Sequence record: PV037725.1
Reading direction: 5' to 3' (one strand)
Length of the DNA stretch: 64,000 nt
The notes beneath the pieces were generated by a model, which was not told where the DNA came from, did not search any database, and saw nothing but the letters and a program-made list of their open reading frames with translations. Both the position numbers and the translations under genes were made by a program. The stretch's first letter is position 1. Each line of letters begins with the position of its first letter. Positions 10,290-30,409 of the stretch are shown here, piece after piece.

Positions 10290-10320
10290 AGGAAGGTGGT
10301 CTAACCGCCTTCTTTATTTT
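10290..10320 (+). terminator. Intrinsic terminator
   Basis: GAAGGTGG/CCGCCTTC stem followed by TTTATTTT. Confidence 0.7.
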
Positions 10321-10336
10321 AGTAAAGGTATTGAAC

Positions 10337-11503
10337 ATGTCTGATGATACACGTCAAGATCCGAGCAATCTTCCGTCCCTGACCTCACCGGTGGAAGAAC
10401 CTACGGAACAAAACACAATCGTTACAGATACATTAGATCAACTCCAAGATCATATTACACAACGTGCCGCCTTGGAAAACTATCGTGATATGGTTATTGC
10501 CGCAGGTCGTGATGGCCTGGACCCAGTAGCCAAACAACTGATGTTGGTCAACTTGCAACAACTTAAACTGAAGCGTAACAGTGTCGGCATGGAGTCTTTT
10601 GATTCTGGCTGCCAAGAGATTACGTTGGAAGGCTTTAGTGAATGGATCGAAGGACTTGGCGAAAAGATTCGAGCCCTGATCGATAAACTGATCGCTATGG
10701 CTAAGGAATTCGCTTCTAAGATTATGTCCGGTGTTGAGTCTGTTAAACAACAGTCTGAGGATCTAATCAAGCGAGCCATGAAACGGGGCAACTCCAAACC
10801 AGCTACCGAACTCCATGATGAAAATAAAGAAGTCTCCATTGATAACCCATCGATCCTTTGGGCCAATGGTGAGTTCTGTATTGCGGATTGCCGCTCTGAA
10901 CAAGAAGTCATTAAGTTCTTCTTGCAGGTATGGCCTAAGTACGCTAAAGACCAAGTCTTACGTGCTAAGAAGATGGTCAGTGAGTACGACGTGGAGTCGG
11001 GTAATTCTGAGAACTTTGAATCCAACATGGGCTTCATTGGTAACCACCAATCCTTCGTTAATAACGTAACCAGTCTAGTCTTGCCGGGTAACAAACAGAT
11101 CGCATTTAAGTATGTTGCTCTGGGTCCTGAATTAGTAGATGCGAAAGATGCCGAACCAGCTCCAGATACACATTCGTTTGAAGTACGTACTGGTGCCGAG
11201 ATCCATAGTACATTGAAGGCTAACATCGCCACAATGAATGCTCTGGGTGGATTGTTCCGTGCTGAATCTGAGGTGTTGAATGAGATGGCTACACTGGGTC
11301 AAGCCTTGACTACCCTTGAAGGTCGTCGTAGTGAGACTATCTGGAAAACAGCCCGTGATGGGTTGGATGATATCTCTAACGCCATGCTGGATCTTATTGG
11401 TCGCCTTAAGCCAAACTATGATCCAATCGTTCGTCACCTCGCCAAAGTGGGTAACGCTCGTAACGCTATCTGCCGTAAAGAACTTGACGCACTGGGTCAA
11501 TGA
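10337..11503 (+). CDS. Inner head protein paralog
   Basis: ATG at 10337 preferred (SD AAAGGT); ALENY, GMESF, TLEGF motifs. Confidence 0.7.
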   Translation: MSDDTRQDPSNLPSLTSPVEEPTEQNTIVTDTLDQLQDHITQRAALENYRDMVIAAGRDGLDPVAKQLMLVNLQQLKLKRNSVGMESFDSGCQEITLEGFSEWIEGLGEKIRALIDKLIAMAKEFASKIMSGVESVKQQSEDLIKRAMKRGNSKPATELHDENKEVSIDNPSILWANGEFCIADCRSEQEVIKFFLQVWPKYAKDQVLRAKKMVSEYDVESGNSENFESNMGFIGNHQSFVNNVTSLVLPGNKQIAFKYVALGPELVDAKDAEPAPDTHSFEVRTGAEIHSTLKANIATMNALGGLFRAESEVLNEMATLGQALTTLEGRRSETIWKTARDGLDDISNAMLDLIGRLKPNYDPIVRHLAKVGNARNAICRKELDALGQ

Positions 11504-13014: not shown

Positions 13015-14118
13015 ATGAATGAAATTGTAGAACTCGCCCCAACAACAGCAGTCAATGCTGCGCCTGACGTAATGAGTACCTTGATGGAGTTGAATCCGGC
13101 TATTGCGGACGAGATCCTAGAGTTGGTACATGGAATCGAACATTACAAAAATATCCGACGCTACAAACCCAAAGAATTTAATCTGGGCCTGGAAGTAGAA
13201 GATCAGTCTAACCTTCTCGACCGATTAGTAGACGCATTGATCCGTTTCATTACACGCTTCATTAAAGACATCTATGAAGGTACGGCTACACTGAGCTTCT
13301 CTTTAGGTAAAGTTCACAACCGTGCCGAGCTGATCAACACTGAATCCAGAACTAAGCGTCGTACTAATCGCAATGACACTTTTAAAATTGATACCCGTGT
13401 GCACAACCTGTGTATCAACTACAAACCTGTTAGCGATCCACAGCAACTCTTGATGTTGATGAAGTCCAACGATACTTTGTTTAAGAACTATTTCAAGTAT
13501 CAGAACATCGATCTCCCATCTGTTATTCCACGCTTACTTGCAATCGACCCTAATTCTGAAACCTCAGTCATTGGGCTAATTGAACTGCTCGCGCCAGTAT
13601 CACCCATGTCGGTTGGTACAGCATTCGGCTTTACCGGTGACGGTAGTTCAAAAGTCAGTATACATCTATTAGGTAATCAACGACTGCACGTACTCAGTAA
13701 GAATCCTGTGGGTGATGCTGTTGAACAGTTGGTTGGTCAAGAGTGGTTGTTGTTACCCGTCTCAGATAGTCCTAAGCCTACGCCACCTAACATTACATAC
13801 AACACGTTCGCTTCGACTATTGAACAAAGTATTCTCCGTGAGATCATCAACACTACCAGTGCACTGGAAGCTAACTTTGGCATCGTATCGCGTAACCGCC
13901 GTGCATCGTCGGTAGATGACTTCACACGTTACTTAGAACGTCTACGTAATGGTATCCTTACAGGTAAGTACACGGGTGAAGCTTTAGATCGGACAAATCA
14001 AATTGTTCGGATGTTAGAAGCTTACGCTACTTGGCTTGTCAACCCTTACTTGAACATGATGGGTCTCTATATCAGAAATGCCAATGCTGTGCTGAATGTA
14101 TGCGCTGCTAACAACTAA
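13015..14118 (+). CDS. Inner head protein paralog
   Basis: 367 aa; GLEVE motif followed by a helical LLDRLVDALIRFI segment as in the neighbouring paralogs. Confidence 0.6.
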   Translation: MNEIVELAPTTAVNAAPDVMSTLMELNPAIADEILELVHGIEHYKNIRRYKPKEFNLGLEVEDQSNLLDRLVDALIRFITRFIKDIYEGTATLSFSLGKVHNRAELINTESRTKRRTNRNDTFKIDTRVHNLCINYKPVSDPQQLLMLMKSNDTLFKNYFKYQNIDLPSVIPRLLAIDPNSETSVIGLIELLAPVSPMSVGTAFGFTGDGSSKVSIHLLGNQRLHVLSKNPVGDAVEQLVGQEWLLLPVSDSPKPTPPNITYNTFASTIEQSILREIINTTSALEANFGIVSRNRRASSVDDFTRYLERLRNGILTGKYTGEALDRTNQIVRMLEAYATWLVNPYLNMMGLYIRNANAVLNVCAANN

Positions 14119-14149
14119 AGACAAAACTGGCTTATTATCTGATAGTATA

Positions 14150-14189
14150 TTCGTCCTGTGGTTATGTGGAGGACGAACTGCATAACCAC
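14150..14189 (+). promoter_or_regulatory. Candidate RNA pseudoknot or two-state hairpin in the 5' leader
   Basis: TTCGTCCT (14150-57) is complementary to AGGACGAA (14170-77); GTGGTTATG (14158-66) is complementary to CATAACCAC (14181-89); the stems interleave. Confidence 0.65.
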
Positions 14190-14216
14190 TCCTGTAACAA
14201 AAAAGGTATTGTCAAC

Positions 14217-17018
14217 ATGTTGAAAAAACTAAATAGCGGTAACTTGTTCTCTTTTGAAGACCACGAGGATACGTCCGGTGAAGATCTTCCAGAGCAAGGT
14301 GTTGTATCTGAAGCGGATGCCGAAAGTGTAGTCGCTGAAGCAACCCCATCGGACGACGTAACCGAAGCGGGCGATGACATTGGTCAAGCAACTCCTAATG
14401 TCGAAATTGAAGCAACCCCAGATGCTGACCTGACTGTAACTGAAGACAGCGTCGACTCTCCGGATGGTAGTACCACTGAGATCGTTGATGAAGTTCCTGC
14501 TGAAGGCGGTTCTTCGGAAGAAGTCAATAAACTCACCGAAGAAGGCGAGGAAGCTGCGGCCACTAAAGATGAGATCGTAGCTTTGGCTACCGCCGAAGCC
14601 ACCAGTGAAGCTGGCGGTACTGATGTAAATGGTAATGCCATCACTGAAGAACAAGCTGCGGAGAATACTGAGGCTGAAGAGATCGATGAAGAGGTCGACG
14701 AAGAAGCTGAGAAATCGGCAGCTGACAAAGATCTCAACGAACAAGTCGAAGACGTAAACGAACACGTTGACGAAGAACTCGGTGAAGCCATTGGCGACGA
14801 TTCCACTGATGGTGGCCTGGACGCTGAATCTACCGACGACACCTCTACTGATATCGACTCCGGTGGCGACCAAGGTGATCTTGGTATGGATGCCGACCTG
14901 GGTGGTGAAGGCGACGTTGAAGGTGGTGATGACGCAGCCTTTGACGACGAAACTCCTTTAGAGGGTACTGACGATGTGGATGCAGGTTCCGATACTACTG
15001 CTGACGATTCTGCTGGTGATGTGGGTAGTGCTGAAACTGATACGGGGTCTGATCAGACTGATGTCGAATCCACAGACGGTGGTGACCTTGGTCAAACGGA
15101 TACTATTCCGGATGCCGAAGGTGTTGACGGGGATAGCTCGGTGGCTGACGACGTAGCTAAGCAAAACGAAGCTGCCGATGTAACCGCAGACGCGGCTAGT
15201 GCCGATGCTGATCAAACCGACTTTATTGCTGGTGATACTCCTGAACAACATGGTGTAGAACCGGCCAGTGACGAACTCCCAGCTAACGATGGTGAAGAAG
15301 TTGTTGCTGAAGCTATCCCAGCCGTTCAGAACCAATCTGACGTGGGTGCCGCGAATGCCAACGCTGAAGTAACTGAGACTACCGAAGATGAAGTAAACTT
15401 CGACGACGAAACTCCACTGGAAGGTGTTGATGACACTGAGACTGAACCTCTTGATGTCAATGCGGAACAAGACCTTACACCGGTAGAAGTCGATGGTCAA
15501 GAAGCAGACGGCCCAACGGGCGACGGCGCCACAGTAGAAGAGTCCCAATCGGATCAACAAGCCGAGGCGATGGATGAAGCCGCTGAAACTACTGAAACCG
15601 AAGAGGAAGAAGGTGCTGGTGAAGCTGAAGATGGTGAATCCGCAGTAGAGACGGAAACCGAAACGGATACTGATGGCTCCACTGCTGAAGTAGTAGAAGA
15701 CATTACTTCTGACGGTGAGCCGGGCATTGACGCTGAGGCTGGTGAGATCGAAGAGACTGAAGAGGAAGCCAACCTTGAAGAAGGTGAATTGGATATCCCT
15801 GACGTCGATACCGATACCACCGAAGAAGAAGTCGAAGAAGCCACTATTGCGGCCGATGAGATGGATGCTGAAGCTGACGCCGAAGAAGCCGAAGGCGACA
15901 TTGCAGAGAAAACTATTGAAGAACTCCAACGTGAGAAAGAGTCCCTCGAGAAATTCTGCGTGATGATCCAATGGGGCATTGCCAACGAATCTTACAACCC
16001 TGGGCTGCTGGCCTACATGGTAGCTGAATCCGATAAGATGCGTGGTGTACTGAACGACATCGGCTTTAAGTTACCTAAGGTTGCATTGGAATCTTACGAC
16101 GCTAAGGATATGGACCTGGCTTATCAAACTACTCTGGAATCCTTCCGTGGTATGTTGTCTCGCATGTCTGGTATCAGTCATCAACTTACCCAAAAGGTAG
16201 AACGTTGGTGGGCTAAGGGTATGGTTGACAAAGTCAAGACCCGTGCTACTGCGTTGAACAAGCAGATTGACCTTTGCTTGGTACAGCTTAAAGAGGCTGA
16301 TAAGTCTACCCATGAAGTAAACGCTATCGGTGCCTATCTGTCACACGCCGACGGACATTTGGTTAAGGCTGTTTCTGACGACCTGAAAGCTATCACTGAA
16401 ATTGGTGGTAAAGGCTTTAAGGCTACCGAAGATCTGCAAACCAATATCGTCAAAGCGTTGAACGACATCACGGGTGCAGCTAACCCTGCTGAAGCAACTA
16501 GCATTGCCGATAAAGTATCTCGTTTCAAAGATACCAAGTCAGCCTTCCCAACCAAGGCGTTCACTCCAGGCTTACTGGGTGGCTATCGCTTGGAACTTAA
16601 GGATGCTAAAGCTGGTGACGCTCTGAAAGATAAGATCATTGATATGGGTCGTCGTGCAGTACCTGTAGTTGTTAAAGAAGGTAAAGGTGTGAAGTCTACT
16701 CAGAAGCTCTCTAAGGGTGATGTAGCCAACTTACTGAAGATGGCTAAGGCTTACGTGGCTTTGGCTGTTAAACTCTCTGAGACGACTGGTGATCGCGCTG
16801 TAGACAACGTATCCAAGATCCGTCTGACTCGTGAACGTGCTTTGCCGATCGCAGTAGAGGGTCGTGTTCGTGGTGGTGATGAGGCTGCAATCGATGCAGC
16901 AGCTAGCGCTCTGGAAATGATTGCTAAGGCACACAACGACCTGTACAAGTTCGTTACCAAACATTGCATCGAAGTTGCTGACGCATTGTGTGGCGTGTCT
17001 AAGAAGTTTACCAAGTAA
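14217..17018 (+). CDS. Giant inner head protein with about 600 aa acidic propeptide (phiKZ gp97-like)
   Basis: ATG 14217 with SD AAAGGT (933 aa); D/E-rich N-terminal two-thirds; ANESY, ALESY, TLESF motifs precede a basic helical mature domain. Confidence 0.7.
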   Translation: MLKKLNSGNLFSFEDHEDTSGEDLPEQGVVSEADAESVVAEATPSDDVTEAGDDIGQATPNVEIEATPDADLTVTEDSVDSPDGSTTEIVDEVPAEGGSSEEVNKLTEEGEEAAATKDEIVALATAEATSEAGGTDVNGNAITEEQAAENTEAEEIDEEVDEEAEKSAADKDLNEQVEDVNEHVDEELGEAIGDDSTDGGLDAESTDDTSTDIDSGGDQGDLGMDADLGGEGDVEGGDDAAFDDETPLEGTDDVDAGSDTTADDSAGDVGSAETDTGSDQTDVESTDGGDLGQTDTIPDAEGVDGDSSVADDVAKQNEAADVTADAASADADQTDFIAGDTPEQHGVEPASDELPANDGEEVVAEAIPAVQNQSDVGAANANAEVTETTEDEVNFDDETPLEGVDDTETEPLDVNAEQDLTPVEVDGQEADGPTGDGATVEESQSDQQAEAMDEAAETTETEEEEGAGEAEDGESAVETETETDTDGSTAEVVEDITSDGEPGIDAEAGEIEETEEEANLEEGELDIPDVDTDTTEEEVEEATIAADEMDAEADAEEAEGDIAEKTIEELQREKESLEKFCVMIQWGIANESYNPGLLAYMVAESDKMRGVLNDIGFKLPKVALESYDAKDMDLAYQTTLESFRGMLSRMSGISHQLTQKVERWWAKGMVDKVKTRATALNKQIDLCLVQLKEADKSTHEVNAIGAYLSHADGHLVKAVSDDLKAITEIGGKGFKATEDLQTNIVKALNDITGAANPAEATSIADKVSRFKDTKSAFPTKAFTPGLLGGYRLELKDAKAGDALKDKIIDMGRRAVPVVVKEGKGVKSTQKLSKGDVANLLKMAKAYVALAVKLSETTGDRAVDNVSKIRLTRERALPIAVEGRVRGGDEAAIDAAASALEMIAKAHNDLYKFVTKHCIEVADALCGVSKKFTK

Positions 17019-17021
17019 CAA

Positions 17022-17053
17022 CATATTGCCCCTCCTTCGGGAGGGGCCTTATG
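17022..17053. terminator. CATA-hairpin-TATG element
   Basis: CATA tt GCCCCTCC TTCG GGAGGGGC ct TATG. Confidence 0.85.
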
Positions 17054-29520: not shown

Positions 29521-30051
29521 ATGCAATTGACTAACGTATCTAAGATTGGCCTAATCAGTGTACTCGCTATTGATCAACCCGGCGGTGTAGAATACTGGAC
29601 CGGTGGCACTGAGTTCCATAAGGACATCGTTCATGCAAATCAACTGGGTTGTGGTGCAGCTATGCATTGGATGGCCAAGTTGAATAATCGCGGCCTCAAT
29701 GTTCGCTGTGTAACTCACCCTGATGGTGATATCCAGATGATCCACTGGGCTGACATTGGTTGGGTTGTGGTAAACCATCGTAACTGGCCAGTGACAGTAC
29801 ACCGCGCCTATTACACTGGCGCATACGGCGAAGGCTGGTTCATGGAGGGTGAAGGTTCTATCGAACGTAAGCTCTGCATCAATCGCCCCAACCACACCTA
29901 CGTGGACATCACGGTACGTGGTCGTGAGATCATCAGTGCCGAACTCCGTGTAGAAGGTGAGACATTCGACAAGTGGGGTACTCTGAGTATTCCATGTGAC
30001 TCCGATCTGGCTTACCAGTTCGGCTTTGACCCTACCCCATTGGAGTTGTAG
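29521..30051 (+). CDS. Hypothetical protein
   Basis: SD GAGGA; 176 aa. Confidence 0.7.
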   Translation: MQLTNVSKIGLISVLAIDQPGGVEYWTGGTEFHKDIVHANQLGCGAAMHWMAKLNNRGLNVRCVTHPDGDIQMIHWADIGWVVVNHRNWPVTVHRAYYTGAYGEGWFMEGEGSIERKLCINRPNHTYVDITVRGREIISAELRVEGETFDKWGTLSIPCDSDLAYQFGFDPTPLEL

Positions 30052-30052
30052 T

Positions 30053-30409
30053 ATGGACGAATACTATCCTACCCTAAAAGAAGTACTTGAAGTGTTGGGG
30101 GAGGATTGTATTCTGGTGGGTTCAGCTACATGGAAACCTGAGTCAGAATGTAAGGACTTTGATTTCGTTATTAACAGTAACGGTGTTAATCGACTGCTTG
30201 AACATTACGGTTACTACATATACCAAGAGGCTGATACCTGGTGGCAATATATACCGGTTGACGCTAAAGGTAAATGTGTTGACTTCTTTTTCGGGTTGTG
30301 TGAAATCGTTGACGAATCAAAGTTTCATCTCCGTCTAACTTATGAGCAAGCTTCCACCCTACCCTTGACTATTAAGATCATTGGTGGGGTGGAGGTACTA
30401 TCTATTTAA
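30053..30409 (+). CDS. Minimal nucleotidyltransferase (pol-beta superfamily)
   Basis: ATG 30053; hGS...DxD motif ILVGSA...KDFDFVI and a third acidic residue in CVDFF; 118 aa. Confidence 0.65.
   Translation: MDEYYPTLKEVLEVLGEDCILVGSATWKPESECKDFDFVINSNGVNRLLEHYGYYIYQEADTWWQYIPVDAKGKCVDFFFGLCEIVDESKFHLRLTYEQASTLPLTIKIIGGVEVLSI

Follow-up and report, generated by a model that had tools for sequence, protein, structure and literature searches.

Structured leaders that act in cis are a familiar kind of element in phages. In bacteriophage T4, both stems of the gene 32 leader form a compact, coaxial H-type pseudoknot with loops of about 1 and 7 nucleotides (nt). The domain 2 hairpin of the thrS leader is placed, relative to its start codon, much like the element described here, and hairpins recognised by CsrA/RsmA display A(N)GGA in the loop, usually together with a second GGA at the Shine-Dalgarno sequence. 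Gene expression in the nucleus-forming, phiKZ-like phages has been understood mostly through promoters and terminators, and we know of no gene-specific post-transcriptional control element characterised in them. Here we analyse a short RNA element in Viktualia, a Pseudomonas phage related to 201phi2-1 and phiKZ. The window is the whole stretch of 64,000 nt (64 kilobases, kb) from record PV037725.1, in which a coordinate equals the record position minus 186000; 201phi2-1 matches about 31% of it at 76% identity. The element is located in the 98-nt spacer separating the orthologs of phiKZ gp96 and gp97, and it is very probably a real, selected RNA structure in the 5' untranslated region (UTR) of the gp97 ortholog. 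It is modular and single-copy and consists of one covarying helix and two invariant complementary heptamers, one of which lies in the hairpin loop. Full-text literature searches on phiKZ and its gp97 returned no description of it, and it is apparently undescribed.

A conserved and covarying hairpin in the gp97 leader

The element can be drawn as two helices, S1 and S2, whose halves interleave (Table 1). S1 comprises 8 perfect base pairs (bp). The core of S2 comprises 9 perfect bp and is extended to 12 bp by U14167.G14180, G14168.U14179 and G14169-C14178; the 12-bp form leaves an 8-nt loop that is the exact complement of the 8 nt directly 5' of the stem. The earlier note, which was made from the letters of the window, had described both helices, the 12-bp extension and the loop complementarity, and had placed the end of the element 27 nt before the ATG at 14217; all of these positions are correct. 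The minimum free energy and centroid folds of the leader both give the 12-bp S2 hairpin; in the centroid fold, the ribosome-binding site stays free of pairing. The S2 stem has a stability of -15 to -20 kcal/mol among relatives. In most lineages S2 folds are more stable by 3-7 kcal/mol than folds containing only S1, and in phiKZ the two are about equal.

A lone 8-bp helix carries no meaning because the window contains 31 perfect local helices of this length against 28.5 expected from simulated sequence. The interleaved pair of helices is the single case in 64 kb, and at least one such pair occurs in 9 of 200 simulated windows; taken alone, it is modestly unusual. It is the comparative data, namely the conservation of the spacer and the strong covariation of S2, that show the element not to be a chance product.

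The comparative set holds 20 orthologous intergenic regions from six clades. Spacers were collected from 201phi2-1, Phabio, phiKZ, RVTF4, D6, Psa21, HPP-Temi, PA1C, PS119XW, phiPA3 and eleven metagenomic relatives that share 46-79% gp96 identity with Viktualia. A plain MAFFT alignment, made without structural fitting, already has the helices in register. Ten of the 12 S2 pairs, including two of the three extension pairs, show changes on both sides. Consistently, 93% of the S2 cells are paired, compared with 32-56% when the partners are slid by 1-3 columns, and none of 500 column shuffles reached the observed S2 covariation score. RNAalifold independently yields just the 12-bp S2. The stem sequences of the clades are unrelated to one another (GUGGUUAUG, GUGACUAUG, GUGAUCAUG, GAGUUAUG, GGCUGUGCC and GAGUAGCG). 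Because these unrelated stems keep pairing, S2 is a genuine, selected hairpin, and because the extension pairs covary, the form selected in the Viktualia clade is the one with the 8-nt loop A-GGACGAA. The covariation check on related phages that the earlier note had proposed thus bears out S2.

The sequences around the stem behave differently from the stem, the S1 halves being invariant next to S2 columns that vary. GGACGAA lies inside the S2 loop in every clade, with 1-5 nt before it and 0-4 nt after it, and UUCGUCC is positioned 1-10 nt upstream of the stem, so that the a-b-a'-b' order of the interleaved halves is found in all six clades. The 5' heptamer departs from this sequence in phiKZ, where it reads UUCGUC, and in the metagenomic relative L019. 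In phiKZ the seventh S1 pair is gone on both sides, and a G.U pair can be added at the opposite end. In L019 (2305-2403) both S1 halves have decayed together (UUGUUUA and GGACGCA), and a G.U-rich S2 is retained. In phiPA3 the exact segment from the 5' half of S1 to the 3' arm of S2 is replaced by 10 nt (L004, 3014-3060), and the promoter box upstream and the Shine-Dalgarno and start region downstream are kept. These two phages are natural cases of loss and provide ready-made controls.

The spacer is conserved more strongly than the genes beside it. Viktualia and 201phi2-1 are 94% identical in the spacer and 71-72% identical in the flanking coding DNA; RVTF4 and D6 are 95% identical in the spacer and 61-73% in the flanking coding DNA, their gp96 proteins being 53% identical. 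The distance from the hairpin to the ATG is held at 26-31 nt in all clades, although every linker differs, and that from GACGAA to the ATG at 36-41 nt.

Searches of the 64 kb with the heptamer pair, with the promoter box and with a covariance model derived from the alignment all lead to this one locus, and each relative genome carries one copy of the element. Protein scans of IMG/VR gave only 201phi2-1, PA7, Phabio and one metagenome relative. A pattern scan of metagenomes with the promoter box and the start region as anchors gave 32 loci, of which just one was real, and that one was already known.

Position of the element in the gp97 transcript

Transcription starts of phiKZ were taken from the published ONT-cappable-seq supplement, in which starts are resolved to about 2 nt. 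The late-promoter start P053 is located at 98803 +/-2 nt and is preceded by ...CGCAATATTTTGA. It lies about 10 nt upstream of the phiKZ S1, on the G/A of a conserved box, which makes the element the 5' end of an mRNA dedicated to gp97. A second late start, P052 at 98764, lies within the end of gp96 and is preceded by ...AATGTATGC. At least three starts serve phiKZ gp97 (P050, P052 and P053). P052 and P053 give units with gp97 alone, TU079 and TU080, which end at terminator T046, and TU077 is a read-through of gp95-gp96-gp97. The element is thus also internal to longer read-through transcripts. The supplement lists no plus-strand termination site in the gp96-gp97 spacer of phiKZ, and, in keeping with this, the contigs of four phiKZ RNA libraries, in which transcript ends are not visible, run unbroken across gp96, the spacer and gp97.

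The box has the consensus CAAT-W-W-T-Y-T-G-A in all clades, including phiPA3, and columns T13, G14 and A15 of alignment A2 do not vary among the 20 sequences. It was not found as a repeated motif in the window. By homology with P053, the late start of Viktualia is predicted at about G14141, 9 nt before S1, and that of 201phi2-1 would be at about 105215. The distance from the start to the 5' half of S1 is 6-11 nt across clades. The published late-promoter consensus is TATG with the G as +1 (PMC4666361).

A small hairpin is seen at the predicted +1 in some relatives. It reads GAAAC-NNN-GUUUC in RVTF4 (L006, 3402-3414) and HPP-Temi (L008, 2955-2967), and its phiKZ counterpart (L005, 3059-3072) reads GAAUG-UUAA-CGUUC, two pairs being changed on both sides between these forms. 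The first 3 nt of the 5' half of S1 also belong to the 3' arm of this hairpin, which is thus a third, mutually exclusive pairing option. Viktualia does not have it.

Pairing states of the leader

The compatibility of the two helices was examined with a crude bead model of phosphates and sugars, in which S1 and S2 are rigid A-form helices and each linker step spans at most 6.5-7 Å. None of 2 million placements accommodated S1 together with the 12-bp S2, and the same was found for Psa21 with its 10-bp stem. S1 together with the 9-bp S2 gave only bent placements, with 110-170 degrees between the axes and none coaxial, whereas control H-type knots of the classical kind passed only when coaxial. 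Because S1 and the 12-bp S2 are incompatible and no coaxial fit is obtained, the model excludes a classical H-type pseudoknot; a pseudoknot was one of the two possibilities offered by the earlier note. The note's remark that the stems may be mutually exclusive is apt: on this model S1 cannot form beside the 12-bp S2 and can form beside the 9-bp S2 only in a bent arrangement. Either the top of S2 opens to admit a strained, bent knot, or S1 and S2 alternate.

A proposed post-transcriptional operator and its alternatives

The element has slightly better than an even chance of acting post-transcriptionally. We propose that it is a gene-specific post-transcriptional operator, and we put the probability of this mechanism as a whole at about 40%. 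The late gp97 mRNA would begin in the conserved box, at about G14141 and some 9 nt before the element. Its leader would fold into the stable 9-12 bp S2 hairpin, with a drifting stem and a loop showing the invariant GGACGAA, and the invariant complement UUCGUCC is placed just 5' of the stem. The heptamers may pair as S1 only upon opening of the top of S2, in a bent, non-coaxial geometry. In the closed-hairpin state the loop and the 5' heptamer would be exposed; in the knotted or alternative state they would mask each other. Because it is fixed 26-31 nt before the start codon, the hairpin stands at the 5' border of the region bound by the 30S subunit, beside an open ribosome-binding site. The invariant loop and/or the heptamer would be recognised in trans by a putative factor, most probably a protein of the phage; once bound, it would set the translation or the lifetime of the abundant gp97-type mRNA, and S1 pairing would tune its access to the loop. 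The scheme presumes real pairing of S1, the existence of such a factor and an output at the level of translation or stability. In its favour count the covariation of S2, the invariance of the S1 halves beside variable S2 columns, the joint decay of both halves in L019, the phiKZ units with gp97 alone, the strong conservation of the spacer, the fixed distances to the ATG, the unpaired ribosome-binding site, the single copy per genome and the exact replacement of the element in phiPA3.

Several observations weigh against this operator. None of the 7 S1 pairs shows a double change, because the halves UUCGUCC and GGACGAA are invariant; the pairing of S1 is suggested by the complementarity of two invariant heptamers. 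Because phiPA3 lives without the element, the element is modulatory at most. No cis output is evident: by inspection, no complementarity to the ribosome-binding site is seen in either heptamer or in the arms of S2, and RNAalifold, run over the leader with 50 nt of coding sequence, gave no pairing with that site. The accessible literature contains no effect of the leader on expression. The start position in Viktualia is predicted from phiKZ, and the geometric model is crude. The earlier note's view of a regulatory leader therefore stands as far as a functional, selected RNA structure is concerned, given its conservation in six clades, the covariation of S2 and the phiKZ start upstream; a switch is possible, and autoregulation by the gene product is a conjecture.

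The hairpin might instead be passive, stabilising the mRNA or insulating the ribosome-binding site against the upstream contexts of three transcript isoforms, with neither factor nor switch. The S2 stem fits such a role in being independent of sequence and yet always stable (-15 to -20 kcal/mol), and so do the three or more starts of phiKZ gp97 and the extra small hairpin, GAAAC/GUUUC or GAAUG/CGUUC, at the predicted +1 in the Temi, RVTF4 and phiKZ clades. However, a passive hairpin leaves unexplained why 14 complementary nt in the loop and the 5' flank are invariant while the stem drifts, and it does not require a conserved distance to the ATG. Furthermore, the Viktualia structure is preceded by about 9-17 unpaired nt, a 5' stretch that is long for protection from 5'-end-dependent decay. 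We regard this explanation as doubtful.

A promoter-proximal role in transcription is unlikely. The element could be a downstream element at the DNA level for the non-virion RNA polymerase (the heptamer at +10..+16), an aid to promoter escape, or a site of nut/put-like antitermination. It begins about 10 nt past the mapped late start; the strength of phiKZ late promoters depends strongly on sequence downstream of +1, for which no consensus is known; and the promoter core is non-consensus, with TCTG or TTTG instead of TATG. The arrangement, in which a variable spacer separates a conserved linear box from a hairpin whose stem covaries and whose loop is conserved, resembles boxA-boxB, and antitermination has been suspected in 201phi2-1 by its transcriptome study (PMC11512511). 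However, phiPA3 has the promoter box without the element, and the heptamers are found nowhere else near genes in the window and are therefore not a general promoter feature. In phiKZ there is no terminator between the element and the end of gp97 to be overridden, and in nut-type sites the box does not have to be complementary to the loop. The spacing to the ATG is kept at least as closely as the spacing to the start, where S1 begins after 6-11 nt.

It is very unlikely that the heptamers pair between molecules to dimerise or chain gp97 mRNAs, in the manner of the phi29 pRNA or retroviral dimerisation sites. Their complementarity is strict even where linkers of 1-2 nt hamper pairing within one molecule, and both are single-stranded in the closed-hairpin state; against this, no role of mRNA dimers is known in these phages, and the bead model permits intramolecular pairing once the top of S2 opens.

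The position of the element just past a stop codon would suit a transcription terminator, either for the upstream operon of internal head proteins or for antisense transcription, and the phiKZ minus-strand termination site T045 at 98802 (L005, 3059) adjoins it. T045 maps 22 nt beyond the hairpin and 1 nt away from the plus-strand start P053, and would be most simply explained by wrongly oriented complementary DNA reads of the abundant gp97 transcript. S2 does not match the terminator motif of phiKZ and 201phi2-1, has no TTAT or U tract and is not called by the terminator scan, and phiKZ lists no plus-strand termination site there and reads through it in TU077, all of which makes a terminator highly improbable.

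Least of all survives the earlier note's proposal that alternative folds direct initiation either to the ATG or to an in-frame CTG further upstream, behind a buried GGAGG, giving two N-terminal isoforms or setting stoichiometry: in Viktualia the GGAGG (14168-14172) does lie 5 nt before a CTG (14178) in frame with ATG 14217 and no stop intervenes, but this is an accident of the Viktualia genome that fails across the 20 sequences, and the proposal is all but certainly wrong. GGAGG is confined to the Viktualia-like clade and Phabio and is found in none of the phiKZ, RVTF4/D6/Psa21 and Temi/PA1C clades. The triplet after GACGAA is, depending on the relative, CTG, CTA, CCC, CCG, CAC, CGG, CGA, CAG, TAA (in PA1C) or TAG (in phiKZ), and just 2 of the 20 sequences have a stop-free, in-frame path from it to the ATG. 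The CTG of 201phi2-1, the nearest named relative, is out of frame because an A-run is 1 nt shorter. The favoured fold, moreover, pairs part of the GGAGG and places the CTG within the stem. A near-cognate start for an N-terminal extension was accordingly rejected.

Further candidates were also considered. A TATG within S2 (14163-14166), which resembles the late-promoter core, was rejected as a late promoter; it is absent from the RVTF4/D6/Psa21 and Temi/PA1C clades and reads CATG in Phabio, and the mapped phiKZ start lies upstream, at the conserved box. Rfam 15, searched at permissive E-value thresholds with the Viktualia and phiKZ regions, gave chance-level matches only (E above 1). The preQ1, SAM-II, guanidine-III and fluoride riboswitches and self-cleaving ribozymes were rejected on this ground and because linker lengths and sequences are not conserved. 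A motif of the CsrA/RsmA type, AGGA or AUGGA, is present in the loop in five clades; the phiKZ loop is AAGACGAA, and the Shine-Dalgarno regions of relatives read AGGU, not GGA.

As a possible partner in trans, positions 30053-30068 (ATGGACGAATACTATC) match, in complement and allowing a 2-nt bulge, the predicted leader over its first 16 nt. The stretch covers the start-codon region of an unlisted open reading frame (ORF) of 118 amino acids (30053-30409). In 201phi2-1 the corresponding sequence is ATGACCGAA; the complementarity is not conserved, and the match is therefore treated as chance. The complementary stretch forms the 3' part of a small hairpin, GUAGUAU-GGACGA-AUACUAU, at 30046-30068, across the stop of one ORF and the start (ATGGACGAA) of the unlisted one.

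Genes and features of the locus

Table 1 Features of the gp97 leader and its surroundings in window coordinates
Feature	Position	Strand	Basis or remark
Upstream gene, phiKZ gp96 / 201phi2-1 gp158 ortholog	13015..14118	+	annotation of PV037725.1 and NC_010821.1
TATG in the last codons of the gp96 ortholog (conserved LNVC codons)	14099..14102	+	position equivalent to phiKZ P052; putative
Conserved promoter box CTTATTATCTGA	14128..14142	+	alignment; homology to phiKZ P053
S1 5' half TTCGTCCT, UUCGUCC(U)	14150..14157	+	8 perfect bp with 14170-14177; heptamer invariant in 18/20 orthologs
S2 5' arm: core GTGGTTATG (14158-14166) and 3-nt extension	14158..14169	+	core 9 perfect bp with 14181-14189; fold, covariation, RNAalifold
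S1 3' half = S2 hairpin loop AGGACGAA, A-GGACGAA	14170..14177	+	fold; alignment
S2 3' arm: 3-nt extension and core CATAACCAC (14181-14189)	14178..14189	+	fold, covariation, RNAalifold
A-rich unstructured spacer with Shine-Dalgarno AAGGT (14203-14207)	14190..14216	+	centroid fold; 27 nt between element end (14189) and ATG 14217
Regulated gene (proposed), phiKZ gp97 / 201phi2-1 gp159 ortholog, 933 amino acids	14217..17018	+	annotation; composition
phiKZ-type intrinsic terminator GCCCCTCC-ttcg-GGAGGGGC, then CTTATG	17029..17052	+	closes the transcription unit; equivalent of phiKZ T046

The gp96 ortholog is an internal head protein of the phiKZ_IP family, with a weak match to Pfam PF12699. The gp97 protein of phiKZ is a major component of the inner body; it undergoes proteolysis during packaging and is injected along with the DNA. 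Residues 1-600 of the gp97 ortholog are extremely acidic, with an isoelectric point (pI) of about 4.1 and 204 Asp+Glu (about 35%) against 11 Lys+Arg. Residues 601-933 are basic (pI 8-9.7), and conservation across clades is limited to this C-terminal part (22-36% identity).

GenBank lists a 29-codon 'hypothetical protein', CDS0361, on the plus strand at 14096-14185, which begins within the gp96 ortholog and crosses S1 and S2. Relatives carry indels here that are not multiples of three, and 201phi2-1 has no annotation at this site; the ORF is almost certainly spurious. The context of the gp97 start codon, CAACATGTTGAA (14211-14228), contains a perfect palindrome, TCAACATGTTGA, in Viktualia. This context is conserved at the nucleotide level in the Viktualia-like, Phabio, phiPA3 and Temi clades (L002-L004, L008, L016-L025). 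The Shine-Dalgarno and start arrangement AAAGGTATTG(N)AACATG is seen again at 10326-10339, before another internal head protein gene.

The terminator that closes the gp97 unit belongs to a class described by the motif BCCYCCCCHWWDGGGRRGGBYTTAT (PMC10914365). It is directly followed by two TTATG motifs resembling late promoters, the same arrangement as T046/P054 in phiKZ. A second canonical terminator of the phiKZ type, AAGGAAGGTGG..CCGCCTTCTT+TATTTT, is located at 10291-10316.

Implications

The leader controls, or at least precedes the gene of, one of the most abundant injected inner-body proteins. It is short and has strong comparative support, is present in the laboratory models phiKZ and 201phi2-1, and is naturally missing in phiPA3. 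Its invariant 7-mers, drifting stem and natural deletion therefore make it a clean experimental system. It could lead to a new RNA-binding regulator and is a candidate portable control part for synthetic biology in Pseudomonas. A speculative extension, which we regard as rather unlikely, is that the heptamers are the site of a dedicated phage-encoded RNA-binding regulator, or of intermolecular pairing, that singles out the mRNA of the main injected inner-body protein in nucleus-forming phages. If true, this could serve, for example, timed or localised translation of gp97 after export from the phage nucleus, and it would be the first gene-specific post-transcriptional control circuit described in Chimalliviridae.

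Comparison with known systems

Within the same phage family, sRNA005 / sRNAgp182 of 201phi2-1 and phiKZ is also a conserved 5'-UTR structure before a structural gene, and it comes from the same type of data as the leader start used here. It differs in locus, the tail gene gp277/gp182, and in structure.

The lambda nut and HK022 put sites are promoter-proximal RNA, as the gp97 leader is, and share with it the linear box, the variable spacer, the hairpin with a covarying stem and the conserved loop. However, the sequences are unrelated, nut has no complementarity between box and loop, the gp97 unit has no terminator to override and the RNA polymerase is of a different kind.

As in thrS and rpsO, a protein bound to a structured operator where the ribosome-binding region begins on its 5' side could compete with the 30S subunit or trap it. 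In rpsO, the Shine-Dalgarno sequence and the start codon lie inside the knot, whereas the Viktualia element ends 27 nt upstream and leaves the site open. Entrapment of the rpsO/S15 type was rejected, the Shine-Dalgarno sequence at 14203-14207 and the ATG at 14217 being unpaired and outside the element. Furthermore, mimicry of a known ligand RNA is not evident here.

The T4 gene 32 leader has no sequence relationship to the Viktualia element. The linkers of 1/1/0 or 1/4/3 here exclude coaxial stacking according to the bead model, one helix is invariant instead of covarying, and gp32 is a single-strand-binding protein whereas the gp97 ortholog is mostly highly acidic. The likeness lies in the overall plan: in both phages, a leader structure stands well upstream of the Shine-Dalgarno sequence, is followed by an unstructured A/U-rich stretch, serves one abundant protein and is conserved among relatives.

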